From Heterodontus francisci (Eukaryota): 64,000 bases of DNA. A model generated the notes under the pieces. That model had not been told where the DNA came from and ran no database searches. It worked only from the letters and a program-made list of their open reading frames with translations. Position numbers and translations under genes: made by a program. Below are positions 1 through 37,259 of the stretch, in pieces. Position 1 is the stretch's first letter; each line of letters begins with the position of its first letter. The stretch lies in assembly GCF_036365525.1 (NCBI RefSeq), contig NC_090382.1:101862595-101926594 (forward strand), in the 5' to 3' direction.

Positions 1-130
1 TCCAGGGTAAAAACAAGGACCACATTCTGCAGTAAATCCCACAGTGGTTTCTGTGCTCACTGTACTTTGTGTGTAACAGTTTTATATTAGTTATTATTTA
101 ATACCTACTGCAAGGTAGCTCTGGACTTAC

Positions 131-403
131 CCAGATCCACATCAACATTTGTGTTTCCACTGAGAACAATGGAGTCATTTTCATGCACTTCCCATGTATA
201 TAAATTCTGATTCTCTGCTCCAACTTGTCTGACTATCAGATAGACTGTGTTATTCAGATGGATCTCATCAATATTGTTCCTCCTGTTCTGCTGAGATGAG
301 TCTCTTGGTTTCCAGTGAAGACTGACTGTATCTGAGAGTCTGGAGATGGTACAGCTGAGGGTGATGTCACTGCCTATTACAGGCCTCTGTGAATCTGTCT
401 CAA
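131..403 (-). CDS. Ig domain 6 exon (paralog of domain 2; F-strand Cys replaced by Trp)
   Basis: tttacAG|TT GAG ... CTG G|gtaag; 91 codons; GSDITLSCTISRLSDTVSLHW...YTWEV. Confidence 0.85.
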
Positions 404-1099
404 CTGTAAAAAACAGATAAATGAAGCTTAGAATTCTCAATAAGTGTTCTGAACTATTGCATTCAGAACTTTCTTTTTTTTACAAAGACACAGTGGTGGG
501 AATTTTATTTCAATGTGAGGGTGGGAACGGGGCGGATGGTCATTTAACCCGCCCCCCGTGTGGGCATGCTGTTTTCCCGACACAAAACCAACACACTCAA
601 TGTTTAAAAAGCTCCACCAAGAGCCAGAGGAGACAATCCGTCCGAGATCGATGATTGGTCACTTAGACCTCTTAGCAAACTTGTTGTTTGTTGACCATTT
701 TGAATTTTCTTTGTAGGCTCAGGATCCACACAGGGTCTCAAACCACAACAGGGAGGAGAAGTTGCAAACACAATGGAGAGACAACAGCAAGAGGCACCAT
801 TAAAGAGAGAAGGCTCAGAAAAGGCCCTCATTCACAGGCAGTCAGTTTTATAGAGACAGGAGAATTATCTGTCCTGTTACTTCGCTCTTGACAAGGACAT
901 TGGGTGGGAGGCGATTGCTTTAGAGGGTGTGGACGGTCCCTTCTGCTTAGAGGCCTCACGGATTCATGAGTGAGGTGTTCCTGAAGACTACACATTCCAA
1001 CTGAAAAGAAGGAAGGACATAACAGGAAATGGGATCAAGCGATTCTGAGATTGGATCAACTTGCAATGAGGAGCAGCATCCGCTGGAGCAGAGGCAAAC

Positions 1100-2200
1100 C
1101 CCTGGGCACCAGGAGCGAGGAAGGAGGGGCAGGAAGGCAACAAAGACAATACCCTCAACAGAGCATCGACCACCAAAGGAGAAACTACCTGGACATGTAG
1201 GAGTGTCAGTGCTGCAGAAGGCTGTACCTGTCCAATTAGATTGTTGCTGACATGTGTACCCTTGTTAAGGGCCATCTGAGGGTTTGTGGAAACCATCACT
1301 ATAGCCTTCCCATGACTGTAAATGTCACAGTGGCCTTGCATTATTTTGTAACTGGGTCCTTCCAGGGAATGGCAACAGTCATTGGTGGCATCTTGCAGGC
1401 AGCAGCACATCATTGCATCACAGAGGTAACGGACACCGAGAGGTCAGGGGATTCCACTGAATTCCAAATGGATAGTGGCACTCAAGCTCAAAGAGCAGTG
1501 ATATTTGTCTCCATCACTGAATTCCCTCAGGTGCAGGGAATCTTTGATTGCTTGCATGCACCAACTGGGAGATTCCTCAACAGGAAGGGATTCCATTCCC
1601 GAAACATTCAGCTGGTATGCAACCACAACAAGTGCTTTATACAGGTGCGTGAACGCTATCCTGGAAGCTGCCATGAAGCCTTCATCCTTTGTTAATTTCA
1701 GGTCCTGAAGCTCTTCATGGTGCAATGGGAAATCTGTGGATGGCTGTTAGCAGATAAACCTTTTCCAATGAGGAGATGGCTGATGGTTCCAGTGCATAAT
1801 CCTGCCTTGGAGGCTGAGAGACACTACAACAGATGCCACCTGAGCACAAGGGTTATTACTGAGCAGGTCATCGGCCTCATGAAGATGATGTTCAGGTGCC
1901 TTGGCCGGTCACGTGGCTCCTTTCAGTACACTCCCTCAAGGGTCTCACGCATTGTGGTGGCCTGTTGCACAGTTCATAGCATGTCCTTGACAAGGGAGAA
2001 GGGCTAGAACAGCACAGCTCCTGAGAGGAGGAAGATGATGAGGAAGAGGAGGATGAAAATGAGGAGGAGGCTGAAGAAGAACTGGAGAATGGTGCCTATG
2101 CTTTGCAGGGTTGCTGCCACGGTAAACTCAGGGGGTGGAACGTTTATCAGAATGGCAGGGACGCTCGGGACACTCAGATCCAGACACGTTTCACCTGAGT
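1100..2200 (+). pseudogene. HARBI1-like DDE transposase remnant
   Basis: Fragments ALHYFVTGSFQ, GIFDCLH, NRKGFHSRNIQLVC, RYPGSCHEAFIL, WLLADKPFP, YNRCHLSTRVITEQVIGLMKMMFRCL; broken by stops and indels. Confidence 0.8.
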
Positions 2201-4099
2201 GATATTCAGTCTGCAGGACATTTGGAGAGGAGATTCTCCTTCATCCGAGTGAGAGCAAACAGCTGTTAAGAACAAAAATCAGCAACTTTCCAATGACACA
2301 AACACTGCAATGCTCCAGAGTCTCCATCTGACGTACTGCTCCCCAACACAATCCTGTGCTTTGCTCACCCTTATTTTTCATTCTCCAGCCCTTCGCCCTG
2401 ATGAAATGAAAATACACAAGTCTGCCTCAGTGCAACAACATGCCGAGCGATTTATCACACAGCAGTTTGATGTCATGTACAACAAAAACACCCAAGAGAC
2501 CCACAAAGTGATATTACAAACACAGAGGCCTCTGCTCATAACCACTTCTACAACTTGCTCCCCCTGTAGCTGAGGATGAGGCAGCAACAGACTGCTCACT
2601 CATGCCTTTCTGGGACTGAGATGCCCGTGGCAGTCGCCCTCATCATGGAAGTGCCAGGGGACACCTCCAAAGGCAGTTGAACCAGCAACACTGCAGGGCC
2701 AGTCACTGTCACAGGGTGCGACTCTACAGATATTTCATCCATTGGAGGGGCCATGGAGATGGATGATGATGTTGCAACCATGAGGGGTGGCCCTCTCATC
2801 ACTATCTGTCGTCACCTCAGACCTTTCATGGCACCCTAGATGGCTCGCGGGGACCACCAGCTGGGAGACAGTTGGCATCCACTCTATGCTTCTTTGAGCC
2901 ATTTTCACTATTGACCGGTCAATACTACAGACTGTGGCATGCTTTCTGTGCATGTCAGTGTGCTGTTCCTGCATCCACTCTGAGTGATGCTGCATATGGC
3001 TCTCCATGAAGTTAGCCACTCGCTCAATGGAGAAGCTCATGTGCTCAAAGCACTGAGACATTGTGGAGCACACGAGATGAATGGATTCCTCCATTGTCAT
3101 CCCATGACTCCACAGCGCCTCAGGTAAATTGACACGTGGGCACACATCTCATGCTGGTTCTCATGATTCACTAGGCTCTGTATCTCCGCCCTGTTGAGCA
3201 GGGCTGCGCCTGTGCCCCGTCTTCCGAGGGGAATTGGCCACAGCTGAATCTGCCTTCCCCGTCACCTCCTGCTCTGATGTGATGTGCATTTCACCCTGTG
3301 CCACTGTATCTAATAACGAGGAGACACCGAGGTGCGAGGATCTGCGCTGGTGGAGGATGCACTATAAAGATGTGACAGTGCAGGCTCTGAGATGTCTTCC
3401 CCCTCTGATTCCTACAGAACAGGTTGGCAGTGTCTTAACTCCTCCCCCTCTGCAGCTGTCCCCGGGGGAGATGTAAAAGAAGGTCATCATGAGAAATCAG
3501 CACAATCATCAGATGCTTCTGCTGTTTGAAGCAATCAGATGACAGGTTATGAATTGACAGTTCATTTCACGGGGAGGATTGCCATGCATCCTCTGAACCT
3601 GGGCTGTTCAGATCTTTTCACCTTGTCCATGTTTGACTCCCATTTCTCCATCTGCAATATCCTGGTGGGTTGCCACTCTGGCCAGATCAAGGACCAGCTC
3701 CTTGAAATGCATCTCATCCAGGCGGACCCTCTTGCTCTCCCTGTGTTGTTCTCCTATTTGGCCTGTGAGGTGAACAAAGATGTCATTAAGACTCTCTCCC
3801 TCACCACTTGCAGCATTTCATGCGCATAGGATTGTAGATTTCCCCATAACCTACGGTCCAATAGCGCTCAGATAATGAACTACGCTGATGGGTCATCGAT
3901 GATACTGTGCTCACACCTCTCCTATGGTCAGGATGTTCCATGTGGTGCATAAAATGGCAAAGCCAAAAGCCTTTATTTGCATACAATGTCATCAGCGATC
4001 AGATATGTGTGGCAAGCCAAAGTGCACAAAGGTATCTATCTAAATGTCTCCCCTTTCATTGAAGAAATTGCAAATTAATGCACATACATGAGAGTTACT

Positions 4100-6670
4100 T
4101 CATTTGAAAGTTACATTTTGTAATTTCCTGTAGCAATTGAAGAGTTGCATCTCATTGTGTAGTTTGTTTGATCTGAGCAAGATGCTTGTCTGTCAAATTC
4201 AATGTCTCTACCGGGTTGATAACTTCCAGAGCATGTTGTTCTGTTGCTTCTTGTTGAATCTGGAAGATTTCACACTCTGTACTGGCATTATCAACTTCCT
4301 TCAATGGGAGTGCAGCTCTCGACAGCATGTCAGTGATGGACATCTGCTCCCCTTGCTCGTACTTCACTTCCAAGTGATATCTCCGCAAATGAAGTAACAT
4401 CCTTTGCAAATACTTAGGAGCAAATAGAAGCTGTTTGAGAAAGATGCTTTGAAGTGGTTTGTGGTCAGACTCTATCATCACTTTCTCTCTCCCAAACAGG
4501 TGCTTGTTGAAATGCTCAAAAGCAAAGACAATAGTCAGGCAGTCTCCCTCGATTTGTGCACAGCATCATTCACTTTGCGTTAACCCTCTAGATGCAAATG
4601 CAACTGTTGTCCTTGCTGCATGAGGGTTGCTCCAAATCCTGTTTCACTGCATCACACTGTAGGGTGACTTCCGCATTGACGTCATAGTACCTCAGCATTG
4701 GCATTGTCGTCACTGGTTGTTTGATGTGTTTGAAAACTGCTTCTTGTTTTGTGCCCCAATACCACTAAATATCCTTTGCAGTGAACTTGCGTAGAGATTC
4801 ACACTCTGATGACAAATTGGGTAAGAACTTGACTCGGTAGTTCACAAATCCAACAAATCATTGAACTGCCTTCACATCTGTTGGTTGCTGCATCTCTGCT
4901 ACTGCTTGCGCCTTATCTGGATCAGGGCAAAGTCCTTTAGCTGTCAGTACATGACCGATGTACTTGAGTTCAGTCAACACCAGCTGCAACATTTTCTTGT
5001 TCAGCTTTCGGTTCATCTGGCGACCTCTGTCAAGCAGTTTCACTCCATTCCAATCATGGTCCGCGATGGCATCTTCCATTGGATCCGGACATCGCGGACA
5101 TCCATAAACCAGAAGATCATCCACTATCGCTTCCACTACTGGTAAACCATTGACTATCTCATGCTGTCTGCGTTGGTCTTCTGCCGGAGCAGTAAAATTG
5201 CCAAATGGCACATGCAACCATCTGTACCTCCCAAATGGCATCAGAAAGTAGTCAGAAAGATATTGCTTTCACTGAAATTCACTTACCAGTATCCACCTTT
5301 AGCATGTAAGGTAGCAAAGACCTTTACCTTGGCAAGTTGAGGCAAAATCTCTTTGATGGTTGATCTTGGGTAGTGCGATCTCTTTAAAGCTTTATTGAGG
5401 TCATTGGGATCAGAACACACTCTCAATTTTAAAGTTTTTTTTCACTGTTACCATACTGCTAATCCAGTCGACAGCAGTTGTCATTTTCTTGATTGCTCCC
5501 ATCTTTTCAAGTTCCTCTATCTTGTCTTTCAAGCTAGGCTTGAGGGCAATTGGAACTCGCCTCGGAAGATGTTGAGTTGGGCTCACAGTCTCATCTACTT
5601 CAAGATGATATTCACCAGAAAGCCATCCAAGAACTGTGAAAATGTCTTTGTAATCTGTCAAGATTTGTTCAGCAGTCAATGACTTGGTGTCATGCAAAAC
5701 ACTGATACAGGGAGGGTTACCAGTCCAAGCTTTTGATTTGTTTCAGACAAGATGAGGGGAATTTGCTCAGTGTCCACTATCTGGAACTGAAGTTTTTCTT
5801 CATTCCTGTTGGACTCTCAGCTTGGTTTGTCCTCTGGAGTGAGCATCATTCCATCATAGAGTCTCAACTTTACCTTTGACATCTTTGTAATCGAGTCACC
5901 ATCTTGAGCTCTTTCACACAAGTCTGCAAAGCTCATGCTGTTGCACGTGGAACCCGTGTCTATCTGACTCTTCATATCAGTCTTGATGGTCTACTTCTGC
6001 AGTCATCAATCCAATAATCACAAACCACTTCCTACCTCGAGACTTGATGCTGCCCAACACGTTCTAGAGTGATTTGTCTGAATCATCATCAGACATCTCT
6101 CCAGCAACCATCTTTGCAGGCTTGTTTATCTTTGTTTCGCAAAATGTTTATGTGCAAAGTGGTTCATCTTCTTGCAGTTAGAGCACTGCTTTCCCCACAC
6201 TGGACATGCTTCCTTTTCCTTCTTGTGGTATCCTCCTGTATTCATATCCACTCCTCTGGCCTTAATCTTTCTGCTGCTCCTTCTGAACGTTGTCCTTCCT
6301 TTACATCATTGACTTGTGCTTGGAAGACTTGGACTGCCTCTTAGCATAGTGCACAGCCTCATCGGTTCTCCCATCAATACTCTTCAGCTATTGATTAGCC
6401 ACCTCAGAGCTTCTGCACATGTCATTAGCTTTCCTGAGAGTAAGCTTTTCTCCTCTCAGCAGACGTGCTCTCACAGCGGGATCTCTTGTTCCTCAAACAA
6501 TCCTATCTCTGCTGAGATCATCCTTCAGTTGCCAAAATCACAAAATTCAGCTGAAAATCTCAGTACAGGCATAGAATGATCAATATTCACCCTCTCTTCC
6601 TGAGCTCTCGCGTTATTCACATATTTTTCATAAATTATGTTAATAGAGGGTTCAAAGTGGGTCTTCAAGT
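4100..6670 (-). mobile_element. Gypsy LTR-retrotransposon internal fragment (gag-protease-RT-RNaseH), degenerate, no LTRs seen
   Basis: PFGRYRWLHVPFG, IVDDLLVYG (RT), ESDHKPLQSIF (RNaseH), QHLPRRVPIALK. Confidence 0.8.
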
Positions 6671-6816
6671 CCTCCAAAATCTCACAGGACTTGCATATAA
6701 TGACACCAGAGGTCACAAGTGTACAGCAAGCCAAAGTGTAAGAAGGTGTTTATCCAAACACAGGAGAACTCTATTCTCCCTCGGGATGCCCCTCTCTTTT
6801 GCATTCTGGTGACTGC

Positions 6817-7133
6817 TGACCTGGGGGAATGTCATCTGGGTCTATCTTTGAACTCACCTTGCCAGACCCAAGCAGATCATTGAAACATTTCCTGCACTGG
6901 ACCCAGTTCCTTCTCACCACTCCTCTGCTGCTGACCTCATGAGCCACCTCCAGACAGGCCTTCTCAGTCATCCTTGTCGGCTTCTTCTGGTGCAGACATG
7001 GAATGCGATGCTTCTCTGGGCCGTCACCAGCACCAGAAGTACCTCAAGTAAGGCACGCGAAAAACAGAGGGTTACCCTGGCACGCGGGCCCTCCCTACAC
7101 ACTGCCCTCTGCTCAGCTTCTCCTTGCAACATG
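6817..7133 (-). pseudogene. Harbinger Myb/SANT (MSANTD/NAIF1-like) first coding exon remnant; downstream remnants at ~2600-3770
   Basis: FSRALLEVL...EVAHEVSSRGVVRRNWVQCRKCFNDLLGSGK|gtgag. Confidence 0.7.
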
Positions 7134-7461
7134 GAGATGAACAGTGACCACATCAATGGCTGCCGCTCATCGTTTAAATCAGGCCTGCTCATCCCTGTGT
7201 CCCGCCTCATTCCTGCGTCCGCCGCTGCTAATTTGGTGGCGAATGTGATGCCAGGCTAATTAACTGGCTTTCCAGTTAAAACTGCAACATGTGCACATTG
7301 CCAATGCGGTGCAGGGTCGGGACCCGGAAATAAACGCGATGTTGAGGTCCTGACCCCGGAATTGAAATCCCACAAAGTCAGAGAAATACTGAGCAGCTGT
7401 GCTTAGTGCTGACAATTAACATTTCCCAGATAATGTTCACTTGTTGCCATTAGCCCCCTCC

Positions 7462-7658
7462 TGTTAATTCTGTATCTATTGTTTAGTGTTATGCAGGTGG
7501 AGGGTGTTAACTGGGGTCTTACTTCAACGCTTCTGAGGAGAGTCTTACTGAGACAAGTGAAGGAGTTGAGTGAGGAGCGACATGTTTGTACTCCTTTTAC
7601 TCTGTACGATAAATGTGAAACTGAGTAAAGATTGGCTCTCGCATTATCCTTCAACAAC
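7462..7658 (+). repeat. Short solo-LTR-like repeat; related copy at ~25701-25907
   Basis: TG...ACA ends; shares the block tttactctgtacRataaatgtgaaactgagtaaagat with the 25.8-kb copy. Confidence 0.5.
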
Positions 7659-8203
7659 AACCTCCTCCCTCCTCTTCCTCCTGTACATCTGATCCATGGC
7701 AGTATCATTCAAAGACGTATATTCACATGCAAATTCCTGACACCCAAATCTATCTCTACACTATCTCTCTCACACCTTCCATTGCCTCTGTGTTGTCTGA
7801 TTGCTTATCCAACATCATGTCTTGGATGAGCCACAATTTCCTCCAGTTCAAGATCTGGAAGACTAAAGTCATCATCTTCGGCTCTTACCAGCAACTCCAT
7901 ACTGTCACCATCAGCTCCATCACCCTCCATGGCCATTGTCTCAGGAATTTTACGAGAATGGACAAAAGATTGGGAAAAAATACAAATGTTACCAATCAAA
8001 ACTACTCACCCTTTGTGCATCCACTAATTCTAATGCACAGAGGATTTTCACTGATCTGTCTGTTTCCAGTGAGAGATTCATTCTGGGCTGGGTGATAGAA
8101 CTGAAGGATCATGACATGATCCCAACATTCTGTTAGGAATATTAGTGGAATTGCTCACAGAAAATCATATTATTGAACCCTTTCTAGTCCTTGTCCTACT
8201 TAC

Positions 8204-8548
8204 CTTTGATCCCAAATACTTCAAACTGTTTCAGGATTTTTTTACTGGGTTGTGTCTGAGTCCAGGTGAACAAGCCCGCAAGTTCAAAGGTGGGCTTTCT
8301 GATTCTCAGATTAAGGGTACCCCAGTCCTCACGTATCCTCTGAGAAATGCCTGGTATATTATTGTACTTATCGCTCCATTGTACAGCCCATCGCTGATCT
8401 TCGCTGTGAAAGGTACCCAATTGATATGTAGTTTGTTGCCCTGAGTGTGGTCTCCATTCCAACACAATGGGACCATTTCCAGGATTTTCTGGTCCTTTCA
8501 ATACAAAGTTCCCTTCCTGATGTAAAAGATAAATATAACTTGGGAATC
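8204..8548 (-). CDS. Ig domain 5 exon (paralog of domain 1, Cys-less V-like)
   Basis: ccttgcAG|GA TTC CCA ... ATC AAA G|gtaag; 115 codons; about half of residues identical to domain 1 (LKGPxNPGNGP, EWxPHSGQ, IRKPTFxLAG). Confidence 0.85.
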
Positions 8549-8904
8549 CTGCAAGGAAAGAATAACAAACATTTTAGAATCAGACAGCAAATTTTTAATC
8601 TGACCTGTGTAATTATTCATCCTGTAGACAATTTGTTTTCAGTAAATTGTTATTGATGATACAGTTCAGACATGCTACAGCACATACACACCAGAGTAAA
8701 ATGCTGTATAGCTGAAAGAGCAAAGGTCACCTTCCTAAAGATACACTTATTAGAATGGATTGTGATTTCTCCCAGCTCCCAAAGTTTAAAAAAAAAGAAT
8801 TCCCCCACATTTATATAGCAATTTTAATAGAAAATAACTTTACAACACTTTACAAACTGTGGAAAAATATAAAAGGATTTAGAGAGAATAAACACAACAA
8901 CTTG

Positions 8905-11245: not shown

Positions 11246-11247
11246 AG

Positions 11248-12200: not shown

Positions 12201-12217
12201 TACACATTTCAAACACC

Positions 12218-12915: not shown

Positions 12916-13715
12916 AAGTTTCAGCATTCAATGTTCACAGAAAATCCTTTTCTCAGTTTCTAAAAGTACACAGAATTCTTAGCTTTCATCTTCAGACCTC
13001 TCGTCTCACTGTCTTCATTGTGATCTTTGATAACAAATGCAAACCCTAACCCAAAATCAAGGCAGCCTCTGCCTCCTGTGCTCACTCACGTCCCCCATCT
13101 TACACGCTTCTTTGTAATCCAAGGAGTAGATGAGGAAGACATTTGTTGATCTCCAAAGGGTTACTAAGGTAAGTGGGTTCACACTTTGCCTTCATTTACA
13201 ATCTTAACCTTCGAATGTGGATGATCAGCCTTCACTGCAAACTTGATGGAGCATCAAGGTGGGAAAATCAGACAACTTTTCACACACTTTCCAAATGCAT
13301 ATTAACATTGTAAAATCTAGCAGACTGTCAGCACAAGATATTCTGTAGACTGCTTGTTCACACATTCATGTAAGCAGGATGCTTGGCTTGGCTCTCGAGT
13401 AATATTGTCTCTGCTTCTCCCAATTCTAACTGATGTGGCTTTTATAACTGCTTACAGGAGGCTGCACGTGCGAACAGATTTGTATCTGAAGGGGACCTCC
13501 CAACCACTGCTCACTGACTCTGAGTAAATTCAGCAATTCTGTGCTTCCAGTAACAGCATAACGGGAAGAAGGAAAATCATTTGATCTGAAACCCCGTGAA
13601 CATTTTTATCCTTCCCATGATCTGCCTGTGGATTTCCCAAGTGAGCTAATTTACAGATATTATAATGAGTGCTCATGGCTCTGCAGCCTCGCGTTCCCTG
13701 CTTTTGTAAAAAAAG

Positions 13716-14095
13716 AAAGATTTGCATTTATATCGCACCTTTCATTACCACTGGATGTCTCAATGCACTTTACAGTCAACAAAGCACAAATGAAGTTTAG
13801 TACTGTAGGAAACGTGGCAGCCAAATTGCGCACAGCAAGCTCCCACAGATGACAATGTGATAATGACCAGATGATCTGTTTCTGTGATGTTGATTGTTTG
13901 ATAAATACTGGCCGGAATACTGTGGATAGCCCACTTGCTCTTCTTCGAAATAGTGCTATGGGATCTTTTACGTCCACCTGAGAGGGCAGACTGGGCCTTG
14001 GTTTGACATCTCATCTGAAAGACAGCGCCTCTGACAGTGCAGCTCTCCCTCAGTATTGGACTGGGGTGTCAGCCTTGATTTTTGTGCTCAAGTTG
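13716..14095 (-). mobile_element. Deu-domain-type SINE (SacSINE1-like); related copies at ~34010-34450, 45020-45160, 47700-48690
   Basis: Shared core gcagccaaWttgcRcacagcaagctcccaca and ctgacagtgcagc...ctcagta. Confidence 0.55.
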
Positions 14096-15645: not shown

Positions 15646-15925
15646 TCCATTTTTATGGTCAGAAAAGAATGGAACTGGTTCCATTTTTCTGTCAAACATA
15701 AATGCTTGCTCTGTCTCAGTGAGTTTACCAACAGTCCAGTTGAGAAATACAGACCAGGAATTTCATAGCTCGCTCCAGGCTGCGCTGAATTATCTCAGGG
15801 TCAATTTTCTGAGGCTCTTTCCCACTGTAGAACCTCACACACAGGATATAAAGGAAGGCCTTAACTCCGGCAACAGGAATAATCAATGGTGACAGAACAT
15901 AAAGAGCAAACCCTGAGGCACTTAC

Positions 15926-16195
15926 CACTCGGCTCCTGATAATATGGGACTAAAACCTGGGGCCTGTTTTGATATAACAAAGCACATATCCAGTTCTCTT
16001 TGCCTCTGTCAGCTTTCTGAATAATCAGTCTCAATGATTTCTCTTCCCCATTCCATCCATTCAATGGTTTTTCTTCAACAGTTTTGCCATCACTGTTAAT
16101 CCAAACAAGTCTCATTGATTCAGTGACATCAGAGACAGAGCAGGTCAGGGTAACAGTGTCTCCCTCAGTCACTGCATCAGGTGGTTCAGCTGTGA
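15926..16195 (-). CDS. Ig domain 4 exon (C2 with WxC motif)
   Basis: ccacAG|TC ACA GCT ... AGT G|gtaag; EGDTVTLTCSV...LVW...ENWICAL; 78-bp intron to the preceding exon. Confidence 0.88.
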
Positions 16196-16273
16196 CTGTG
16201 GAAACAAGAAAATCATTTAGATTTTAAACAATAACATGATCATTGAAAACCATGGAAACATTCTGTCTCCTAC

Positions 16274-16618
16274 CTTTAACTGTGATTAGTTTAATGGTCA
16301 CATATTTATTTGATCCCAGAGAACATGTGTAAATTCCTGAATCTTCAAACAATACAGGGACAATCCTCACATTGAAGTTCTTGCCATTAAAATTTGCCAT
16401 TGTGAGAACCAGTCGACTCCTGAAGTAAGTCCTGTTTATATTGATGAGCTGAGATTTCCCTGCATTTGCTATTTGATTCTCCTGATTTTGACGATGATGT
16501 GACCTCCAGCTCCATGCAGCAGAGTTGATAGAGTAAACAGAATAAAAATAACAAATCAGGTTGAGTTCACTGTGATCTGTGCCTGACCGATAAATTGTGT
16601 AACTCTTCCCATATAAAT
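16274..16618 (-). CDS. Ig domain 3 exon (canonical V-set)
   Basis: Manual translation (absent from ORF track): LYGKSYTIYRSGTDHSELNLICYFYSVYSINSAAWSWRSHHRQNQENQIANAGKSQLININRTYFRSRLVLTMANFNGKNFNVRIVPVLFEDSGIYTCSLGSNKYVTIKLITVK; C...W...DSGIYTC; ccacAG acceptor, G|gtagg donor; 115 codons. Confidence 0.88.
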
Positions 16619-17705
16619 CTGTGGCAGAAAGACAGAGAACAATGTGTTAGAATTTTAAAATGACTGATATAAAGAAAGAGGGCAAAATAATGAATGGCCT
16701 TAACTAGATGAAATTATTTTGTGTTTTAATCATCAAACCTTGCTTCATCAAGTTTTTGTCAAAGCTATGAGTTGTTTAAACATTGAAAACCTCATTGAAT
16801 TCAATACCCAAAAGCAACATAATTTTGTGAAAATAAAATCTTTTTGAGTTTTAATATGATGTTGTCTGTGAGCCAGGAATAATACTATGACATCACATAT
16901 CCTATATTGTTCGGCTCGGCCAGTAACACGGAGTCCTGCTAATGGCGACTGCAGTTTTGTCCAAATACGGTTTCCTTCAGTCAGTGCAAGTGCAATCTAC
17001 ATTTATGTGGAATAATTATTCAAAAATGGTCCCATGCTGACAAAATTCTGCCACCAGTTCTCATCTCACCCATGTAAAATGGGTACATCCCTGCTCCATG
17101 GGCCTGACCCACTTTAACACAATCCATAAAACATGGTCGCTGCTGTTGGAGTTGGGGAAACTTGTAGGTTCTTTCCACACTGAACCCTGACTCCTCTTAC
17201 ATTTAATATTTTGCACAGACTTTATACCTGTGCACATTTTGCACATTATTTATTTATTTCTTTTTCTCTATTTCTACTACAGCTTTCAAATCTCCTCAGC
17301 CAGACTAACCCAGAGTTGGTTTAATTGTTGCTGAAATACAACTTCACAGCTGACAAAATTGGAAGGTTGGAAATCCTTTACTTATCGTCCAGGGAACAAT
17401 CATGATGCTTTCTGACAGAAACATGGGGTAATTTGTCTTTGTGCGATAGTGTAAATGGGTAATAATAAATTGGCAGCACGTTTCACATCTCACAAAGGTG
17501 ACTCATTATTGCACATGGTTACAATTACCTGTCCACATTCTGTCCCACACTATATCCTCCGCCCCCATCCTTACTGACATACACAGACTCCCCGTCCCTC
17601 AAAATATCAAATTTAAAATCCTCATCATTGTTGACAAATCACTTCACAGCCTCACGCCAATTTACCCCTGCAACTTCCTGCAGGATAATCTTTTAGATTT
17701 TTTTT

Positions 17706-17901
17706 TAGATTAGAGATACAGCACTGAAACAGGCCCTTCGGCCCACCGAGTCTGTGCCGAACATCAACCACCCATTTATACTAATCCTACACTAATCCCA
17801 TATTCCTACCAAACATCCCCACCTGTCCCTATATTTCCCTACCACCTACCTATACTAGTGACAATTTATAATGGCCAATTTACCTATCAACCTGCAAGTC
17901 T
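17706..17901 (-). mobile_element. 5'-truncated HE1/V-SINE-type SINE inserted in an L2 fragment (~17520-18010, +)
   Basis: Near-identical to 3' half of the SINE at 35184-35533. Confidence 0.75.
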
Positions 17902-18416
17902 TCTTTCACATTCCCTGTTGTCTTCTCACTGTGTCCTCTCTCTATTCCAACATTGGTGGCAATACCTTCTGTTTCCTCAGCCCTAACCTCTGCAACTCCC
18001 TCCTTGAACCTCTCACTTTTAGCTTTTCCCCTCTTCCTCCTTCAAAGCCCCACTCCCAGCCTCTGTCATTTCTCTATCCCACCATCTCTACTCTACATTG
18101 CCATCATTTGTATCCTTCCCTCTCCCATCCATGACCATTGATTCCCTATCCTTCCCTCTTCCCTTAGTCCTGCTCCCAGCTCAATGCTAATTTGAAGGCT
18201 AAGAGTGTGCAGCAGCTGGAATCACTTCAAATAACAGCAGAACTCATTAGATGTGACATTGAGAGGAGAATGGCCAGTTATTTGTTCAATGTTGATATGT
18301 GCATCATGTTGACTGAATGCATAAAGTTGTGATGATTGACATGTATGACCCACTCTATATTTAACAGTTTTATATTAGTAACTTTTTAATATCCACTGTG
18401 AGAAAACTGCACTTAC

Positions 18417-18686
18417 ATTCGGTCACAGAAAAATCTCCTTCTCCTGTGAGAATAATGGATCCATTTTCCTGCACTTCACAAACATACGACTTCTCATCCT
18501 TAACTGCAACATGTTTGATTATCTGATAGACTGTGTTATTTAGTTGGATCTGATCAGTTTTCCTCCTGTTCTGCTCAGATGAGTCTCTCTGTTTCCAATG
18601 AAGACTGACCTTATCTGAGAGTTTGGAGATGGTACAGCTGAGAGTAACATCACTGCCCACCTCAGGCTGCTGTAAACTTGACTCAA
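18417..18686 (-). CDS. Ig domain 2 exon (C2-like)
   Basis: ccacAG|TT GAG ... GAA T|gtaag; GSDVTLSCTIS...SLHW...YVCEV with both Cys; 90 codons. Confidence 0.88.
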
Positions 18687-18799
18687 CTGTGGAAAACAGA
18701 TCAATGTGATTTAGTGTCAGTAGTGATGTGTACAATCCAATGATCATCATCAGCACCTGTCACTTGCTGCATTAATGATTAGACCGAATTACATCAAAC

Positions 18800-23880: not shown

Positions 23881-24274
23881 TTAATCTTTTATCAATAGAA
23901 TAACACAGTGGGGACGAAAATTCTTGGTTCTCCTCCACCTCCTGGAGTGTCCAGGGTCAGGTCAAGCTTACATAGTTTGGATGGTATTTGTGGATGTCTG
24001 TACCATAATGGACAGGGGGTGGAAACTCACCAGAATCGGGTGTGATGTAAATGTGGTCCCCATGTTATCTGACATGGGGAAGGTTCCAGTCCTACCCTGT
24101 ACTCAATTGGCCTAGAACATTTCAGTAGGACCACACACCATATGCACTGGGAACCTGGACAGAAAATCCACAGCAAAGGTCATCACAACCCAAGAATTTA
24201 TTTAAGTTAGTGGGTTTATAAAATGTACCTGAGAAAGGCTCCAACCATTGAGCCTCCATGAAGAATGGTACTTC

Positions 24275-27085
24275 ATAGAGTCATAGAGTCACTTAAGGCT
24301 TAAAAGGAAGCCAGTTGGCCCATCAAATCCATGCTGGCTCTCCACAGAGCAATCCAATCAGTCCCACTCTTCTGCTCGATCCCTGTAACCCCGCATGTTT
24401 GTTTCCTTCAAATGCCCATCCTGTTTCCTTTTGAAATCATTGATTCCGCCAACCTCATGGGCAGTGGGTTCCAGGTCATTGCCACTCGCTGTATAAAAAA
24501 ATTCTTCCTCATATTCCCCTTGCATCTCTTACCCAAAACCTTCAAGCTGTGTCCCCTAGAGCCTGTCATAATCTTGTACAACTCTATCAAATCTCCCCTC
24601 TATCTCCTTTTCTCCAAGGAGAACAACCCCAGCTTTTCTAACCTAACCTCGAAGCTAAAATTCCTCCATCCCTGGATCCATCCTGGTAAATCTCCTTTGC
24701 ACCCTCCCAAGGACTCTCACATCTTTCCTTACGTGTGCTGAAACAACTGGATGCAATACTCCAGTTGCGGCCTTACCAGAGCTTTACAAAGGTTCAGCAT
24801 AAACTCCCTGCTTCTGTACTCTAGGCCCCTATTTATGAAGCCCAGGATCCATACGCTTTGCTAACCACTCTCTCAATATGTCCTGCCGCCTTCAAAGATC
24901 GACATTCATGTACCCCCAAGTTCCTCTTTTACTGCACACTCTTTTGAACTGCATCATTATGTCTGTATTGCCTCACCCTATCCCTTTTGCCAAAATGCAT
25001 CACTCCACACTTGTCAGTATTAAATTCCACCTGCCACTTGTCTACCCATTCTGCTAGCGTATCTAGGTCCTGCTGCAGCCGATTCGTATCATCCTCACTG
25101 TTTGCCACTCTTCCAAGTTTGATATCATTGGGAAATTTTGAAATTCTACTCTGTATTCCAAAATCCAAGTCATTTATATATAGCAAAAAAAACAGTGGTA
25201 CTCACATTGACCCTTGGGGAACACCACTGTACACATCTTTCCCTGCATTACCTTCATCAACCTTCTTTGTTACTTCATCAAAGCATTCAATTCGATTCGT
25301 CAAGCATGATCTGTGTTTTACAAATCCAAGCTAGCTATCCTTAATTAACTCAAACCTCTCCAAGTGCCTGTTGATTTTTTTCCTGATTATTGTTTCTAAA
25401 AACTTACCCACTATGGATGTTAAAATAACTGGCCAGTAGCTACTAGGAATGTCCTTACACTTGCTTGAATAAGGGTTTCATATTTGCCACTCTCCAATCC
25501 TCAGGCACCTCCCCCATAGCCAGGGAAGATTGGAAGATTATGACAAGCCCTTTCATTATCTCCACCCCCATTTCCTTTTGCAAACCGGGGTGCAAGACAT
25601 CCGGACCAGGTGATGTATCGATCCTAAGCAAAGCCAGCCATTCCAGTGCCTCCTCCCTCTCAATGTTTATGCTATCCATTACCTCTACTCGCTTTGTCTC
25701 TGTTAATCTCTTAATTGTGTATCAATTGTTTAATTATAAAAGGTGGAGGGTGTTTATTGGGATCTTACTTGAGCACTGATAAGCAGACACTTACTGAGAC
25801 TGGTGGAGGGTTTTTGAGTGATGAACCACATGTTTGTAATCCTTTTACTCTGTACAATAAATGTGAAACTGAGTAAAGATAGGCTCCGGCATCATCCTTC
25901 CACAACATGTTTTCTGGAATTTAACAGCCTCTACTGATATTTCGTCAGATTCCTCTTCCTTAGTAAACACTGATACAAAGTACTCATTACGTATTCTAGC
26001 CTTGCCTTATGCCGCTAAACATATTTTACCCTCTTTGTTCCAAATAGGCCCCACTCCACCTCTTATTACTGTTTACTGTTGACATGCTGGTGGAAGATTT
26101 TTGGGTTCTCTTTTATGTTGACTGCCATTCTATTCTTATTCTAGTCTTATTTTCCTCTTCACCTACCCTCTCATCTTATTGTAATTGGCCTGTTTCTCAA
26201 GAACACAAGAAATAGGAGCAAAAGTAGAAAATATGGTCCATCGAGCCTGCTCCGCCAAACAATATGATCATGACTGATCTTGGGCTTCAATTCCATTTTC
26301 CTGCCCGCTCCCCATATCCCTTGATTCCCCATGAGATCAAAAATCTACCTATCCCAGTCTTAAATGCATTCAAGATGGAGCATCCACAACCCTCTGGGGT
26401 AGAGAATTCCAAAGATTCACAACTCTTAGAGTGGAGTAATTTCTCCTCATCTCAGTCCTAAGTGATTGGCCCCTTATCCTCAAACTGTGTCCCCGTGTTC
26501 TATTTTCCCTGACATCGGAATCAATCTCTCAGCTTCTCCCCTATCAAGCCCTTTCAGAATCTTGTATGTCTCAATTGGATCGCCTCTCATTCTTCTAAAC
26601 TTCAGAGAATATAGGCCCAATTTACTCAGCCTTCATTATAGGACAACCCCCTCATCTGAAGGACCAATTTAGCAAATCTTCGCTGCTCTGCCTCCAGTGC
26701 AAATATATCCTTTCTTAAATGTGGAGACCCAAACAGCACACAGTATTCCAGCTGTGGTCTCACCAAAGCCCTGTACAATTTTAGGAAGACTTCTTTATTC
26801 CTGTACTCCAATTCCCTTGCAATAAAGCTCACTTGACGAATTCACTGACGTACATCATACACATTCTTTTTTGTTTCATCATAGTCTTTATCTCCCTTGT
26901 CATCCAAGGAGACCTGTTTTTGGTTCCCCTACCTTTCACCCTTATTGGAATGTACCTAGCATGTATCTGAAGTGTCTCTTCCTTAAAGATAATCCATTGT
27001 TCCATTACAGTTTTTCCTGTCAGTCTTTTGTTCCATTTTATCCTGGCTCGATCCCTTCTCAATGCATTGAAATTAGCCCTCTTCA
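24275..27085 (-). mobile_element. Stack of CR1 LINE fragments
   Basis: KNFFIQRVAMTWN, YINDL...[25 protein letters not shown]; catagagt and aagaa tails. Confidence 0.75.
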
Positions 27086-27598
27086 AAGAAGAGGCTTGTT
27101 CTAAAAATTCCCACCCTGACTTGCAGTCCCACCTGACAACATGACAAGTAATAATCAAATCTTGAACAGGTACTTTATTTCCAATGCCAGGCTAAATAAA
27201 CGATAGCATCCATTAGTTGCAGGAAAACAACAATCTGGTACATGACTCATGTGACATTCCCTATGGACCATCCTTTGTACCATGAGCACCACTAAAAATG
27301 TAAATGAGTTGACTTTCTATTCTGGTCAATTTATTTTGGTTCAGTTTGGGCCAAACACCTGAAGACAAATGGCCCAGAGCTGCTACAGTCAGGATCAAAT
27401 TCTGGCCATTATGACATTTCAGGATTGGATGCTATTTTGTTTCAAGTTCCTTTGACAGTAACCTTATTCTCATTTAGATTGTTACACACATCGACCAACC
27501 GAGTTGTACAGCTGTTAACAACATCCTTAGTTGGTAAAATCTTTTACATTTGATTTCCTTACAGTAAAGATTTTAAATATTATTGATCTGACACTATC

Positions 27599-29224: not shown

Positions 29225-29226
29225 AA

Positions 29227-30032
29227 TGGGGTTAATTTTAACATTGGGACCTGTTGGGACTGAGGAGGCCTGAGAGCATGTGGGAAACCTGGAAATCGTG
29301 GTTCTCCACATGCTATGGAGTTTTAAATCCACAGCATGTGATTGGCATCACAACAAGATCCCTGCAGGGATGTCTGTCTGATTGACAGGCTTTGCCTCCA
29401 GTTGGGCAGGGAACACTTTAGAAGATGCTGCAGTCCAGGTAGATCTGAGCTCCGACCTTGGGCTGGGGTAGGTGAGGGGTAGAAGGATTTGATCCCCAGC
29501 CCTGAGGGGCCGGGGGGGTTCAACCACAAGAGTTGGGGTCCGTTCACCAGTCCTGTGGTGGGCTGGGGTGTCTGGCCTGGAGTGGTGATTGGGGGTGTGG
29601 GGTCAGTGTTTCACCACCAATCCGGGGGAGGAATTTTGATTGCAGGGAAGGAGAGGGTGGTGGGCAGTCTGATTACAGAGTGTGGGTATCCAATTGTAGG
29701 GGATGCTCTGATCTGAAGGTGGGGGTGTTTTGTATGGAGTTTTTCTACTGGTGGATGAAGGGTGCTTGGGAGGTCTGGAATAAAGCACTCCTTCTGCTCC
29801 TGGAATACAAGGACTGCTCACAAAGGTTGTCCTCACGTTGCTGCATCTGCTGGGTTCACCAGGGCTTGGAAAGTATCGACAGCCACTGTTAAACCTGCAA
29901 AGTGGGTTAAATCTGAGTCTTCCCAACTCATTAACATATTTGAATTGCTAACCCGTTCCTGTCCTACAAAAGGTCAGCGGGTTGGAGTTAGGTTCCTGAC
30001 ACACTTCCATTCTTGGGGAGGAATTTAACCAC
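29227..30032. mobile_element. MITE-like element
   Basis: Ends GGGGTTAATTTT / GAATTTAACCAC. Confidence 0.4.
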
Positions 30033-30321
30033 TCACTCATCCACCCTCCCACCCACTCCCCCATGTTAACATTCTTTGCCATGTTTCTACTGCTCTCCTG
30101 AAGGTGTTAACTCTTTGGCAGAGTCCAGGTTCCACGGACACACACCATCTTCTGGAACTGCAAACAAGTGACACAATAAAAAGGTTAACTGTATGACAGG
30201 GGCAATAATACTGATCAATCTTATTGCTACACGTGATCAATTGGTTTTGGTAACAGAATTCAGTACATCTCACAGAGACTGTGCCAGATTATGTACAGAT
30301 CATAATACTCTCTGCGGAGTA

Positions 30322-33279: not shown

Positions 33280-33512
33280 GAGTAGATTCCTCAGTTTCCT
33301 CTTTCTCGTGGGATTGCCAAAATGTACAGTTGTGTTGACTATTTTAGGAGAAATAATGAACAAAATCTTTCCCCTGGTTGTTTTAATGTGGGATATACTC
33401 TGCAATGGGTGATATAAAACTCTCATGATCCTGGCAATTACTTATTATTACATATCAAATTATTCATATATAATCATGTTATTGAACTTTTTTGAATCTT
33501 TGTTTCACTCAC

Positions 33513-33851
33513 CGTTGAGGCCGAATATTTCATACCATTTCAGGATTTTATTTCTTGGATGTGTTTGAGTCAAGATGAATGATCCCGCAAGTTTAAATGT
33601 GGGTTTTCTAATTTGCAGATTAATGGTACCATGATCCCGGATTATATTCTGATACAAGTAATTGTTTCTATATCGAGTCCATTGTGCGTCCCAGTTACCC
33701 CAGTAATCTTTCGCAAAAGTAACCAGCTGCTGAATTTCTTGCCCTGAGTGTGGTTTCCATTCCCAGACAACAGGCCCATTTCCAGGATTGTTTGGTCCTT
33801 TTAATGAAATGTCACCTCTCTCATGCAAAAAATAAATATGATTTGGGTTTC
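33513..33851 (-). CDS. Ig domain 1 exon (V-like, lacks both canonical cysteines)
   Basis: ctaacAG|GA AAC CCA ... CTC AAC G|gtgag; 113 codons; VVWEW C-strand, NLQIRKPTFKLAGSFIL E-F region; paralogous to exon 8204-8548. Confidence 0.85.
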
Positions 33852-35067
33852 CTGTTAGAAAGAGGAACAACATAAGTATTTATCAAATCACAATTTCTTA
33901 ATCCAATATTTCGAATGATTAGCAATGTTAATCCATTTAGAGTCATATTTTTAGATTCAACTGATCATGTTGCCTTCATTACAATCACTATTAAAAAATA
34001 GACATGTTTTTAGATAGTACCTTTCACAACCGCTGGACGTCCCAAAGGTTTACATTCAATGACGTACTTTTGAAATGTAGTTACTGTTGTAATGCAGGAA
34101 ATGCGGCAGCCAATTTGCACACAGCAAGCTCCCACAAACAATAATGTGATAATGGCCAGTTAATCTGTTCTTGTGATGTTGATTGATGGATAAATATTGG
34201 CCAGGACACCAGGGGTAACTCCCCTGCGGCTCTTCAAAATAATGCTGTAGATTTTTAACGTCCACTTGAACGAACAGGTGGATTCTCGGTTTAACCCCTC
34301 ATCTAAACAGTAACATCTCTGACAATGCAGCATTTTCTCAGTACTGCAATGACTGTCGTTCTTCATTGTTGTGTTCAAGTCCTGGTGCAGAGCTTGAATC
34401 TACAACTTTCTGACTCAGAGGTAAGAATGCTTCCCACTGATCCACCACAGCAATTCCATTATACATTCAATGTATCAATTACTAGAGTTATCTGAATATA
34501 CATCATCACTACAAAAAATAATCAAAAAGAAAAGAGAGGACATGGTTAATTCCATGTTCCAGAAAATGAAAGCTCCAAAATTTCATTGTGGTTCCTGATT
34601 GGAAGGGGGCATTATCAGATTGGACATGAGTTAACGGGAGAAGAATTAATGCAGGATAATATTATGTCAGGTCTCCACCCATTTGTCCTCTACCGGGATT
34701 TCTCAAATTAGGAGGAGATCATGTGGTTCCTGTGTTCACTCTTCACTGTGTCTGAAGCATGACAGAGATAAAGCAGCTCTTGAAACCTGACCCACAGCCT
34801 CTTTCCTCCAAGTGCTTTGCCTTATCTATGAAGGTGATATTTAACCTTAATGCATTCAGATACTTCCAGGTGGCCTTTGGTGACATTGGTCACGCAATTC
34901 AGTCAGAAGTTCATCACTACCATTCACTGGACTGTATTTCCACCTTCAAATCACCATCTACCTTCATTTCAAGGATAACAGTAAAGTAATAAAACCCTCA
35001 TTATAACCAATATTGTATTTACATTTTCATCTGGGAAGTTTTCCAAAGCAGTAAATCCCGGCAGGCA

Positions 35068-36133
35068 TGGGGTGGAATTTTATTATGGGGGCTGGGGTCC
35101 TGACATCTGGAGAACTGATGCCGAGATCCCCACGTCACCTCTTCTACAGAAGGCCTGCTGAATTTAGTGCCAATCAAGCACTTAGATTAGATTAGAGATA
35201 CAGCACTGAAACAGGCCCTTCGGCCCACCGAGTCTGTGCCGAACATCAACCACCCATTTATACTAATCCTACACTAATCCCATATTCCTACCAAAAACAT
35301 CCCCACCTGTCCCTATATTTCCCTACCACCTACCTATACTAGTGACAATTTATAATGGCCAATTTACCTTTCAACCTGCAAGTCTTTTGGCTTGTAGGAG
35401 GAAACCAGAGCACCCGGAGAAAACCCAGGCAGACACAGGGAGAACTTGCAAACTCCACACAGGCAGTACCCAGAATCGAACCCGGGTCGCTGGAGCTGTG
35501 AGGCTGCGGTGCTAACCACTGCGCCACTGTGCCACCCTTAAGTGGACAGCAGCAGGCCTTCTACGGGATCAGGGACCCTGGCGGGGGAAGTCCTGCCCTT
35601 GCAATGCTATCAGCCAATCAGAGGCCGGCAGCTGCATTGCCACCGCAGAGGTGGTGGCTGCCGCTGCAAGTGCACCTGCCGGAGGCCCAGGAGCGTTGCT
35701 GGAACCAGGCCTTAGATAGGTCAGGGCGGGAGGGGTCTCACAGGGGAGGGGGGGGCTAGGTGGTCGGCAGCAAGTGCAGGGGGTTGGCCCTCAGCGGACA
35801 CCCCTTCCCGATGCCAGGTCCCTCATTCAGACACTAAGTGCCTTTGAACGAGGGCCACCCCGACCCCAACACCGAGCAAAGCGCATGGTTTTCGGTGCCA
35901 TGTTTCCTGTGCACCAACAGGACTCACCTGCTGCACAGCTAATTGCAGCTGCAACGGGAAGAGGCCATTAATTGGGTATTTATTGCCCAGGTAAGGGCTT
36001 AAGTTGGCAGCAGGGAATGAAGGCCATTCAAAAGCTTTCTGCCCCAGGAAACCCCCTTCACCACCATCCCACCCAATTTAATGCTCACACTACCTCCAAA
36101 CCCGCCACGGGGGAGAGCATAAAAATCCCCCCC
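35068..36133. mobile_element. Harbinger-type MITE hosting a SINE
   Basis: Ends GGGGTGGAATTTTAT / ATAAAAATCCCCCC. Confidence 0.55.
35184..35533 (-). mobile_element. Full-length HE1/V-SINE-type tRNA-derived SINE
   Basis: Box A GTGGCGCAGTGG and box B GGTTCGATTC, V-domain-like tgtgtggagtttgca...ctccctgtg, CR1-like tail with (TCTAA)n. Confidence 0.85.
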
Positions 36134-36304
36134 TTGTGTCTGTGTGACTTGATAAAATAGCAACTCACATCACAATTAGCAAGAACACAATGGCTCTGTA
36201 CACACTGTATTCACAGTTTGGACACTAGATCAAAGTGGGGCCTAAAATGAGGATCAGCGACAAACTCTTTCAGACGATGTTTAAACTAAACTATAACATT
36301 TATA

Positions 36305-36430
36305 ACAAAAGCAAAATACTGCAGATGTTGGAAATCTGAAATATAAACAGAAAATTCTGGAAATACTCAGGACGTCTGGCAACATCTGTGGAGAGAGAAG
36401 CAGAGTTAATGTTTCAGGTCTGTGACCTTG
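36305..36430 (-). repeat. Penelope-type short repeat fragment
   Basis: Reverse-complement similarity to 58560-58672. Confidence 0.6.
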
Positions 36431-36605
36431 CAAAGCCTTGGATATATTCAATGACCCAGACTCCACTGCTCTCTGCGGGGGGAGAGAAATCTGGGAAATG
36501 ATAATAAAAACCATATTTCCTTTTTGATTATTGGTGCGTGAATTCATTGAACTCAATAATAAAATAAAACCAGATGAACTTATTTGGTGGGAATAAGGCA
36601 CTTAC

Positions 36606-36666
36606 TTAGTGTGAAAACAGATGGAAGGAGAAACACAAGGAAACTGAACGTCAAACCTGTTGGCAT
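36606..36666 (-). CDS. Signal-peptide exon MPTGLTFSFLVFLLPSVFTL(R)
   Basis: Acceptor ttttctgcAG|CAAA-ATG (A at -3), 20 mostly hydrophobic codons, phase-1 donor A|gtaagt; joins in frame to the exon at 33851. Too short for the ORF track. Confidence 0.8.
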
Positions 36667-37259
36667 TTTGCTGCAGAAAAGTCGTAGACTCATTTCACAG
36701 ATTCAGTCTCTTTCCCTGCAAGAAATATACAGACAGATAGATACATTCAGAAAACCACCTGAAGTTAAACAGAAACATATTTCTTCAATATGTTTAACAA
36801 CTAAGATTGCGAAGATAAAGAAATCAGCTAAAACAACTTGTTAAGTTATTTCCTCATTCTAATTTAGAACTGTCAAATGTATAATAAACTTTTTCAGGAA
36901 AGTGCTCCATCTCATCTCGTGATAAATGTAATTACATTTACTCATCCTATTATTATAATGGACTATGCAGAATCCATCTCTTATCCACCAGTCACTTACA
37001 GTTTCCTACGGAAAATAAAGTAATTGAAATAGGAATAAAACAAGAAATGTAATTCCCTACGATAGGGAGAGGAGACAAAAAATACAATTGCAAAAGATTT
37101 CTCCACCAAAATTTTCACTGACACATAGCTCAATAAAACTGATTTGTAAACTGATGAATTTTACATAACAGAGTATGAATTAACAGCAATCAGCATTTTC
37201 TTATTTTCTGCTGTCACACTTATTGAAAATATTTGTGTAATAATGTGCTTTCAATGGCA

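Follow-up and report, generated by a model that had tools for sequence, protein, structure and literature searches.

The subject of this report is a stretch of 64,000 nucleotides from the horn shark Heterodontus francisci (NCBI RefSeq assembly GCF_036365525.1, contig NC_090382.1, positions 101,862,595 to 101,926,594 of the forward strand), here called the window, and a gene encoded on its minus strand. Very probably the window holds the 5' part of one expressed gene for a type I inhibitory receptor with eight immunoglobulin (Ig) domains. The ectodomain is built from a cassette which is present twice and which consists of a Cys-less V-like domain, a C2 domain, a canonical V domain, and a C2 domain with a WxC motif. 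The initial annotation, made from the letters alone, had proposed an uncharacterised immune-type receptor derived from a doubled V-C2-V-C2 cassette; the database protein and the exon junctions bear this out. The gene model as such is already public annotation. What is gained is the recognition of a family, with its architecture and its age. No older living vertebrates than sharks and rays have an immunity based on antibodies and T cells, and little has been described, to our knowledge, of their innate-type Ig receptor families. A large and old family of paired receptors, with ITIMs (immunoreceptor tyrosine-based inhibitory motifs) on one side and charged membrane spans on the other, is carried as 'uncharacterized' in public records. 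Its cassette contains WxC in a C2 domain, a rare motif by which CD4 and LAG-3 are otherwise defined, and therefore the origin of CD4, LAG-3 and the G6F-like molecules can be tested with a concrete outgroup.

On the minus strand a leader exon is followed by six Ig exons, D1 to D6, each preceded by AG and followed by GT. All six are of phase 1-1, and the reading frame is open throughout (Table 1). The window contains no N. This layout had been recognised in the initial annotation with the borders 15926, 8548 and 131 exactly placed, and its start at 36670 falls between the two ATGs of the leader exon. The exons were searched singly; the full-length protein is the database record P0155, together with its isoforms. 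In Pfam, D3 is a V-set domain (28.8 bits against a cut-off of 26, E 1.4e-6). D2 and D4 pass the cut-off of the family 'ig', D6 stays under every cut-off, and D1 and D5 are without any match at E up to 1.

P0155 (XP_067900056.1, Heterodontus francisci, 'uncharacterized protein', 965 residues) matches the translations of all seven exons at 100% and in order, the leader corresponding to residues 1-29. Past D6 follow two further Ig domains, D7 (66% identity to D3) and D8 (75% identity to D4, with WTC), and then a membrane span and a tail; the sequence encoding these parts lies left of the window. A single gene with more than six, perhaps eight, Ig domains had been suspected from the window alone, and eight is indeed the number in P0155. 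The database entries of the gene are XP_067900054 to XP_067900060, and D2 through D6 are contiguous in all six isoforms compared. The predicted isoform X6 (P0183) reads after D8 into a short, different end without a membrane span, which is likewise encoded left of the window; by its sequence it may be a secreted form. The N-terminus of the predicted isoform X5 (P0181) is identical in 12 of 12 residues to a stretch of the D1-D2 intron (tblastn), an exon known from the predicted isoform only.

The joining of these exons was examined in contigs of four public runs, X1 to X4, from one sample and labelled 'RNA?' by guess. Of the sampled words of 15900-16650, 70-74% were present in these runs, and their contigs were aligned to 15850-18750. 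Two joints occur in four of four runs, i.e., 16195|16274 between D3 and D4 with 78 bases skipped, and 16618|18417 between D2 and D3 with 1798 bases skipped. The skipped stretches have CT..AC ends when read on the plus strand, and hence GT..AG ends in the sense of the gene. Summed contig depth is hundreds to thousands in the exon bins and 0-10 in the intron bins, a repeat at 17693-17983 excepted. At the donor of D4, the loose ends of one contig in run X3 (255 letters) and one in run X4 (55 letters) equal window positions 8518-8547. This stretch adjoins the acceptor of D5; the pattern matches the window once and has no match in 100 shuffles. As these loose ends equal the start of D5, it follows that D2, D3, D4 and D5 are joined in processed transcripts. 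The junction 15926>8548, which the initial annotation had named as a check, is thus found in contigs which run from D4 straight into D5.

The same contigs bear on the possibility of two tandem genes, a four-Ig gene comprising the leader and D1-D4 and then a second gene starting at D5. D5 does retain the acceptor and the N-terminal motif of D1, a domain which follows a leader, and four-Ig family members exist in the same species, e.g., P0020. Against this stand the direct passage from D4 into D5 in the contigs and the joining of D4 to D5 in every one of the six isoforms, and models from other sharks and from rays show this eight-domain order as well. Furthermore, leader, membrane-span and tail exons are missing between D4 and D5, as had been noted from the letters: by tblastn within the window a second leader copy was not found (best other match E 0.087), nor was a membrane-span or tail exon (best match E 0.099, on the other strand). 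Searches of the window for D7 and D8 gave only the paralogous D3 and D4; D2 and D4 as queries gave weak matches at 29381-29521 (E 0.015 to 0.06). We regard two genes as most improbable.

When the six window domains were used as probes, the retrieved proteins resolved into a repeating order V0-Ca-V-Cb, in which V0 is the D1/D5 type, Ca the D2/D6 type, V the D3 type and Cb the D4 type. The likeness of D3-D6 to D1-D4 of CD4, proposed in the initial annotation, cuts across two cassettes; the natural cassette begins with the Cys-less V domain after the leader. A profile of D1 and D5 run against 1.84 billion representative proteins retrieved only 38 at E up to 0.001. One follow-up search listed 103 proteins, all from cartilaginous fish save two from a loach, which were rejected as members, being repeats of a different V domain. 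Four-domain members are present in the horn shark, Heptranchias, Pristiophorus, a chimaera, bichir, reedfish, sturgeons and paddlefish, and the bonefish member is a truncated record of three domains. Eight-domain members are found in many sharks and rays, and longer arrays are modelled in catshark and eel. Many copies of the family are located on one 122-Mb record. The records name the proteins 'uncharacterized', 'hypothetical' or 'Ig-like domain-containing'; the few automatic family names are obscurin-like, VCAM1-like, CD276 homolog and CEACAM5-like, and no database name in the retrieved family contains G6F. In the literature searched, with most subscription journals lying outside the search, we came upon no account of this family.

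The age of the doubling can be read from a tree of V0 domains. It was built by a quick method from 103 segments (97 different) out of 54 of 173 proteins, namely those with a recorded species. Segments with fewer than 85 profile positions were dropped and P0155 was left out as the window gene itself; four rows are cross-matches to V domains. A D5-type clade of 39 rows, the V0 of the second cassette, is supported with 97 in the Shimodaira-Hasegawa-like approximate likelihood ratio test (SH-aLRT), and a D1-type clade of 40 rows with 98. Both clades contain sharks and rays, hence the doubling predates the shark-ray split. The end branches are far longer in the D1-type than in the D5-type clade. 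The initial annotation had considered the elongated receptor lineage-specific. This does not hold, since the doubling is common to sharks and rays, and the four-domain family reaches the chimaera and basal ray-finned fishes.

The domains of the window gene are conserved to different degrees. Compared with other species and with paralogs, D1 is the least identical domain (45-71%) and D4-D6 are the most identical; D5 is 82-92% and D6 87-96% identical to other sharks and a paralog. A neighbouring horn-shark gene outside the window (P0185, P0188, P0180, P0186) is 97-100% identical to the window gene over D3-D8 and 91% in D2, yet in the leader identity is only 52% and in D1 only 64%. This neighbour has an Arg in the membrane span, and the Tyr of the last ITIM is a Ser. 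A near-identical stalk combined with a differing D1 and a differing tail suggests, as far as sequences tell, either an exchange of the D1 exon or a conversion of the rest.

This conservation is difficult to reconcile with D5-D6 as a decaying partial duplicate, i.e., as pseudo-exons. Such a view could point to D6, which has lost the F-strand Cys and falls short of all Pfam cut-offs. Of the family's 192 Ca-type domains, however, 62 have a Trp at this position and 129 a Cys; the Trp stands at the same place in eight-Ig proteins of many sharks and rays, nearly always in the second-cassette Ca of these animals, and the B-strand Cys is kept. Trp at the D6 F-strand is a conserved trait, not decay. 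D5 and D6 rank among the most conserved domains, their frames are open, their splice sites are intact, and D5 is part of the spliced contigs. We give decay next to no probability. A side aspect is the unpaired B-strand Cys of D6, which is itself conserved and might form an inter-chain bond.

The membrane span of the window gene, VVIFGSLALLLIIILALVLSL, is uncharged. In the longest isoform (X1) it is followed by a tail of about 120 residues with YSN at 905 and two ITIMs, IHYGSV at 948 and VIYAQI at 987; the consensus used was (S/I/V/L)xYxx(I/V/L). A regular-expression scan of this tail detected no ITAM (immunoreceptor tyrosine-based activation motif), no Cx(C/H) and no (F/Y)xxL(D/E). A continuation left of the window had been foreseen: D7, D8, a membrane span and ITIMs are there, a CxC/CxH-type motif and an ITAM are not. 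By sequence the protein combines a signal peptide, an Ig ectodomain, an uncharged span and at least one ITIM, the attributes of an inhibitory Ig receptor.

A crude census of 184 family proteins, taken after dropping the two loach and two bacterial or metagenome rows, extends this view. A membrane-span-like segment was detected in 125 of 184. The span is uncharged in 86 of these 125, and of the 86 proteins 69 have at least one ITIM, 54 at least two, and 57 a YxN; an ITAM is present in none of the 86 tails. In the remaining 39 the span core contains K or R. Of these, 36 are without ITIM, and the median tail is 41 residues long. Charged-span relatives from the same species are P0003 (Lys) and P0185 (Arg). 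A GYLLVKL-like motif is common to members from sharks through sturgeons. Judged from these sequences, the family has the pattern of paired inhibitory and activating receptors. A ligand would be bound via the fast-evolving membrane-distal domains, above all D1. Phosphorylated ITIMs would recruit SH2 phosphatases and dampen the cell, and the relatives with charged span and short tail would signal oppositely through an adaptor chain. D4-D6, the most conserved domains, may act as a stalk or as the site of contact with other chains.

Several points weigh against an expressed inhibitory receptor with eight Ig domains. The run data are contigs whose designation as RNA is a guess; they carry no strand, no level and no full-length molecule, and all four runs stem from a single sample. 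The leader-D1, D1-D2 and D5-D6 junctions rest on the predicted database model. ITIM-consensus sites arise in tails by chance, and no record of a ligand, of phosphorylation or of phosphatase binding was found for any family member. Presumably an adhesion role as in PECAM-1 or CEACAM1 would also be compatible with such a protein. Finally, the Ig-like nature of D1 rests only on weak profile matches. A profile of 18 V0 domains produced 29 matches in the PDB at E up to 10; all 29 are Ig-superfamily proteins, among them Fc-epsilon receptor alpha, sodium channel beta-4, CD79b and CD200R, and the best E value is 0.015. In a single-sequence PDB search D1 retrieved nothing Ig-like.

Kinship of the family with CD4, LAG-3 and G6F, as advanced in the initial annotation, is suggestive only. 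According to PMC10768021, the most telling motif of the CD4/LAG-3 family is an F-strand WxC present in D2 as well as in D4, and the tails are marked by Cx(C/H) in CD4 and (F/Y)xxL(D/E) in LAG-3. The same paper describes shark CD4 and LAG-3 as identified, separate genes, by default one each per haploid genome, with no intron in D1 (PMC10768021). The V exon uninterrupted by an intron, which had been listed as a difference from CD4/LAG-3, is therefore no difference at all in sharks. The window protein has the V-C2-V-C2 order in the form V0-Ca-V-Cb, once per cassette and twice in all. It has WIC in D4 and WTC in D8, but YVC in D2 and YTW in D6. Of the proposed kinship, the domain order, the ranks of LAG-3 in the PDB and the Atlas neighbours of a sturgeon member speak in favour; the absence of the tail motifs, the restriction of WxC to one C2 type, the generic Pfam matches and the generic Atlas neighbours of the window protein speak against it.

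The structural searches give a similarly mixed picture. A whole-protein profile from 11 four-domain members was compared with 177,635 distinct PDB sequences. Carcinoembryonic antigen came first (E 4.4e-13) with no stretch passing alone. Human LAG-3 took ranks 2-4 (E 2.5e-12 to 4.8e-12) and mouse LAG-3 rank 7; CD4 D1 was matched at about E 1e-6. Among the best 60 PDB matches LAG-3 is the only molecule with two stretches each passing alone: the end of V plus Cb aligns to the end of D1 plus D2 and to the end of D3 plus D4 of LAG-3, WxC included. With a profile of Cb alone, LAG-3 D2 is aligned end to end (E 1.1e-4), and DIP-alpha, carcinoembryonic antigen, neurotrimin and others score higher. The Ca profile had only weak matches, namely antibody light chains and, in CD4 D1, the E-F strands. 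Single-sequence searches with D4 and D3 were unspecific (PD-1, KIT, MXRA8, pIgR, antibodies), and in Pfam four full-length members matched generic Ig families only, at E up to 1, with no CD4-specific family among them. In the Atlas, the clusters nearest to the sturgeon member P0032 (0.95-0.97, without alignment) are 'putative g6f-like', 'g6f-like', contactin-2, CD4, LAG-3, CD4-1 and G6F. The two nearest, both at 0.97, are the ones named g6f-like, and the first may be P0032's own cluster. Residues 1-440 of the window protein have only generic Ig clusters as neighbours (0.91-0.93).

If the gene were the CD4 or LAG-3 ortholog of sharks, or truly belonged to their family, this would account for the domain order, for WxC in D4 and D8, for the high ranks of LAG-3 with its two aligned two-domain stretches and its D2 covering the whole Cb profile, and for CD4, CD4-1 and LAG-3 in the neighbourhood of the sturgeon protein. 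It is called into question by the separate CD4 and LAG-3 genes already reported in sharks, by D2 and D6 lacking WxC, by a tail devoid of the CD4 and LAG-3 motifs, by the generic Pfam and unspecific single-sequence matches, by the proteins which outscore LAG-3 with the Cb profile, and by a family of many copies with paired forms. We consider this identity highly improbable. The family resembles CD4 and LAG-3 only distantly, and on the sequences at hand a membership in the CD4/LAG-3 or the G6F-like group is not shown.

Kinship to the CEACAM or the CD2/SLAM group, which have a disulfide-less N-terminal V domain, merits a comparable assessment. Here too C2 domains come after an N-terminal V-like domain which is Cys-less. 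The automatic name of one Heptranchias isoform is CEACAM5-like, and the first place of carcinoembryonic antigen in the whole-protein search was reached by summed weak matches. The tail motifs may resemble those of CEACAM1 as well. On the other hand, no CEACAM, CD2 or SLAM is among the 29 PDB matches of the V0 profile, nor is CD4 or LAG-3, and carcinoembryonic antigen lacks a single stretch which passes by itself. On account of the V0 result, a CEACAM or CD2/SLAM origin of the Cys-less V domain was rejected. We know of no canonical V domain joined to a WxC C2 domain in the CEACAM or CD2/SLAM families. Taken as a whole, this affiliation is about as improbable as a true membership in the CD4/LAG-3 family. 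A 'CEACAM homolog', possibly a member of the present family, is mentioned for expressed sequence tags of the little skate (PMC3628338).

The comparison with CD4 and LAG-3 can be stated more precisely. Like the window cassette, CD4 and LAG-3 have four domains in V-C2-V-C2 order, thought to derive from a doubled V-C2 pair. The WxC motif is in the F strand of the C2 domain which follows a canonical V domain, and each Ig domain is a single phase-1 exon both in the window gene and in the shark genes for CD4 and LAG-3. Among solved structures the best four-domain match is to LAG-3, whose inhibitory tail logic is similar. The Cys-less V domain of CD4 is D3. The window cassette begins with a Cys-less V domain, and its order of Cys-less and canonical V domains is thus the reverse of that in CD4. 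Further differences are the WxC in one of two C2 types, the eight domains, and a tail with classical ITIMs plus YxN in place of Cx(C/H) and (F/Y)xxL(D/E). The family is many-copy with charged-span partners, CD4 and LAG-3 are single-copy co-receptors. The level of similarity to LAG-3 and CD4, E 1e-4 to 1e-12, is reached among many other Ig proteins.

Teleost G6fL is a receptor of four Ig-like domains which crosses the membrane once; its short tail carries YxN and, divided between two exons, an ITAM (PMC3528668). YxN is shared by four-Ig members of the family and by isoform X1 of the window gene. Yet G6fL signals via an ITAM and the window gene has ITIMs: it combines eight Ig domains with YSN (isoform X1) and two ITIMs, and is without ITAM. 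The likeness to G6fL is one of description and of Atlas neighbours.

Paired Ig receptor families are LILR, KIR, SIRP, the NITR, LITR and DICP of fish, and the MDIR of skate; long ITIM receptors are CD22 and PECAM-1. The paired families, too, are clustered multigene families in which ITIM tails are opposed to Lys/Arg spans with short tails and in which the membrane-distal domain evolves rapidly. They differ from the present family in that the latter has the V0-C2-V-C2 (WxC) make-up, and no sequence match ties the two together. Moreover, what sets the near-identical neighbour gene apart lies mainly in D1 and the tail and, unlike in the paired families, not in the tail alone. Going by its sequence, the window gene would work like an ITIM receptor of a paired family and is built like a doubled CD4/LAG-3-type cassette.

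From this combination a tentative and rather doubtful proposal may be derived. The family could be the surviving sister or the ancestral pool of the CD4/LAG-3/G6F group, old, many-copy and paired, and based on the V0-C2-V-C2 (WxC) cassette. It would have been kept in cartilaginous and basal ray-finned fishes, would have been lost or become unrecognisable in tetrapods and most teleosts, and would have acquired new specificities via exchange of the N-terminal V0 exon on a stalk that hardly changes, as between the window gene and its neighbour. If so, the single-copy CD4 and LAG-3 descend from a paired-receptor family of innate type.

The internal duplication is visible in protein and DNA. D1 and D5 are 55% and D2 and D6 56% identical in amino acids. 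In a self-blastn, 74-423 pairs with 18362-18706 (76% over 350 bases) and 8149-8568 with 33458-33870 (71% over 428 bases). The first 60 intron bases after the exon pairs are 73% (D2/D6) and 67% (D1/D5) identical, about equal to the exon DNA itself (76% and 72%), and identity drops to 48-56% in the following 70-100 bases. That D5-D6 are paralogs of D1-D2 with alignable introns, as first noticed in the initial annotation, is therefore confirmed, for about 55 flanking intron bases. Such similarity of flanks despite a duplication before the shark-ray split suggests that splicing signals are under constraint or that conversion has taken place between the two cassettes. The flanks of the duplicated exons contain one run of 17 identical bases. 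A pair of stretches at 33993-34380 and 13711-14093 (71%) was considered as a further relic of the duplication and was rejected, as a third, inverted copy at 48493-48687 identifies it as a repeat.

Table 1. Features located in the window; all exon and flank positions belong to the receptor gene.
Feature	Position	Strand	Remarks
Leader (signal peptide) exon	36606..36693	-	ATG 36693, second ATG 36666; phase-1 donor after 36606; 29 residues
D1, Cys-less V-like domain (V0), fastest-evolving	33513..33851	-	P0155 31-142
Alternative first coding exon, predicted isoform X5	25796..25831	-	12 residues, no signal peptide; in D1-D2 intron
D2, C2/I-type Ig with standard Cys...YxC pair (Ca)	18417..18686	-	P0155 144-232
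Intron flank after D2, aligns with flank after D6	18362..18416	-	45/62 columns identical over first 60 bases
D3, canonical V-set	16274..16618	-	Pfam V-set; P0155 234-347
D4, C2 with W-I-C in F strand (Cb)	15926..16195	-	P0155 349-437
D5, second Cys-less V-like domain, D1 paralog	8204..8548	-	P0155 439-552
Intron flank after D5, aligns with flank after D1 (33458-33512)	8149..8203	-	40/60 columns identical
D6, D2 paralog, F-strand Cys replaced by Trp (YTWEV)	131..403	-	P0155 554-643
Intron flank after D6, aligns with flank after D2	74..130	-	self-blastn
LINE (long interspersed nuclear element) reverse-transcriptase open reading frame, 745 residues	20268-22505	+	Pfam; inside D1-D2 intron
LINE open reading frame, upstream of gene	53550-54701	-	Pfam RVT_1/Exo_endo_phos set
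LINE open reading frame, upstream of gene	55248-56135	-	Pfam RVT_1/Exo_endo_phos set

Two stretches of 200 bases, 25708-25907 and 7461-7659, are alike to 81%, a closer resemblance than that of the duplicated exons. Both have the same orientation and lie in the equivalent introns D1-D2 and D5-D6; a third copy is absent from the window. The first stretch contains the 12-residue alternative first exon of the predicted isoform X5. The pair could be a repeat element or an intron element which was kept.

No further cellular gene was seen in the stretch from 36.7 to 64 kb, and the window otherwise contains only LINE open reading frames. The two located upstream of the gene are one reverse-transcriptase frame and one endonuclease frame according to Pfam (RVT_1, Exo_endo_phos). 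The stretch 36321-36429 was considered as a second promoter or leader and was rejected as a repeat, with copies at 58575-58921. At 17693-17983, in the D2-D3 intron, the summed contig depth reaches 100,000 to 2.4 million, and loose ends are numerous in four of four runs; apparently this is a highly repeated, transcribed element.

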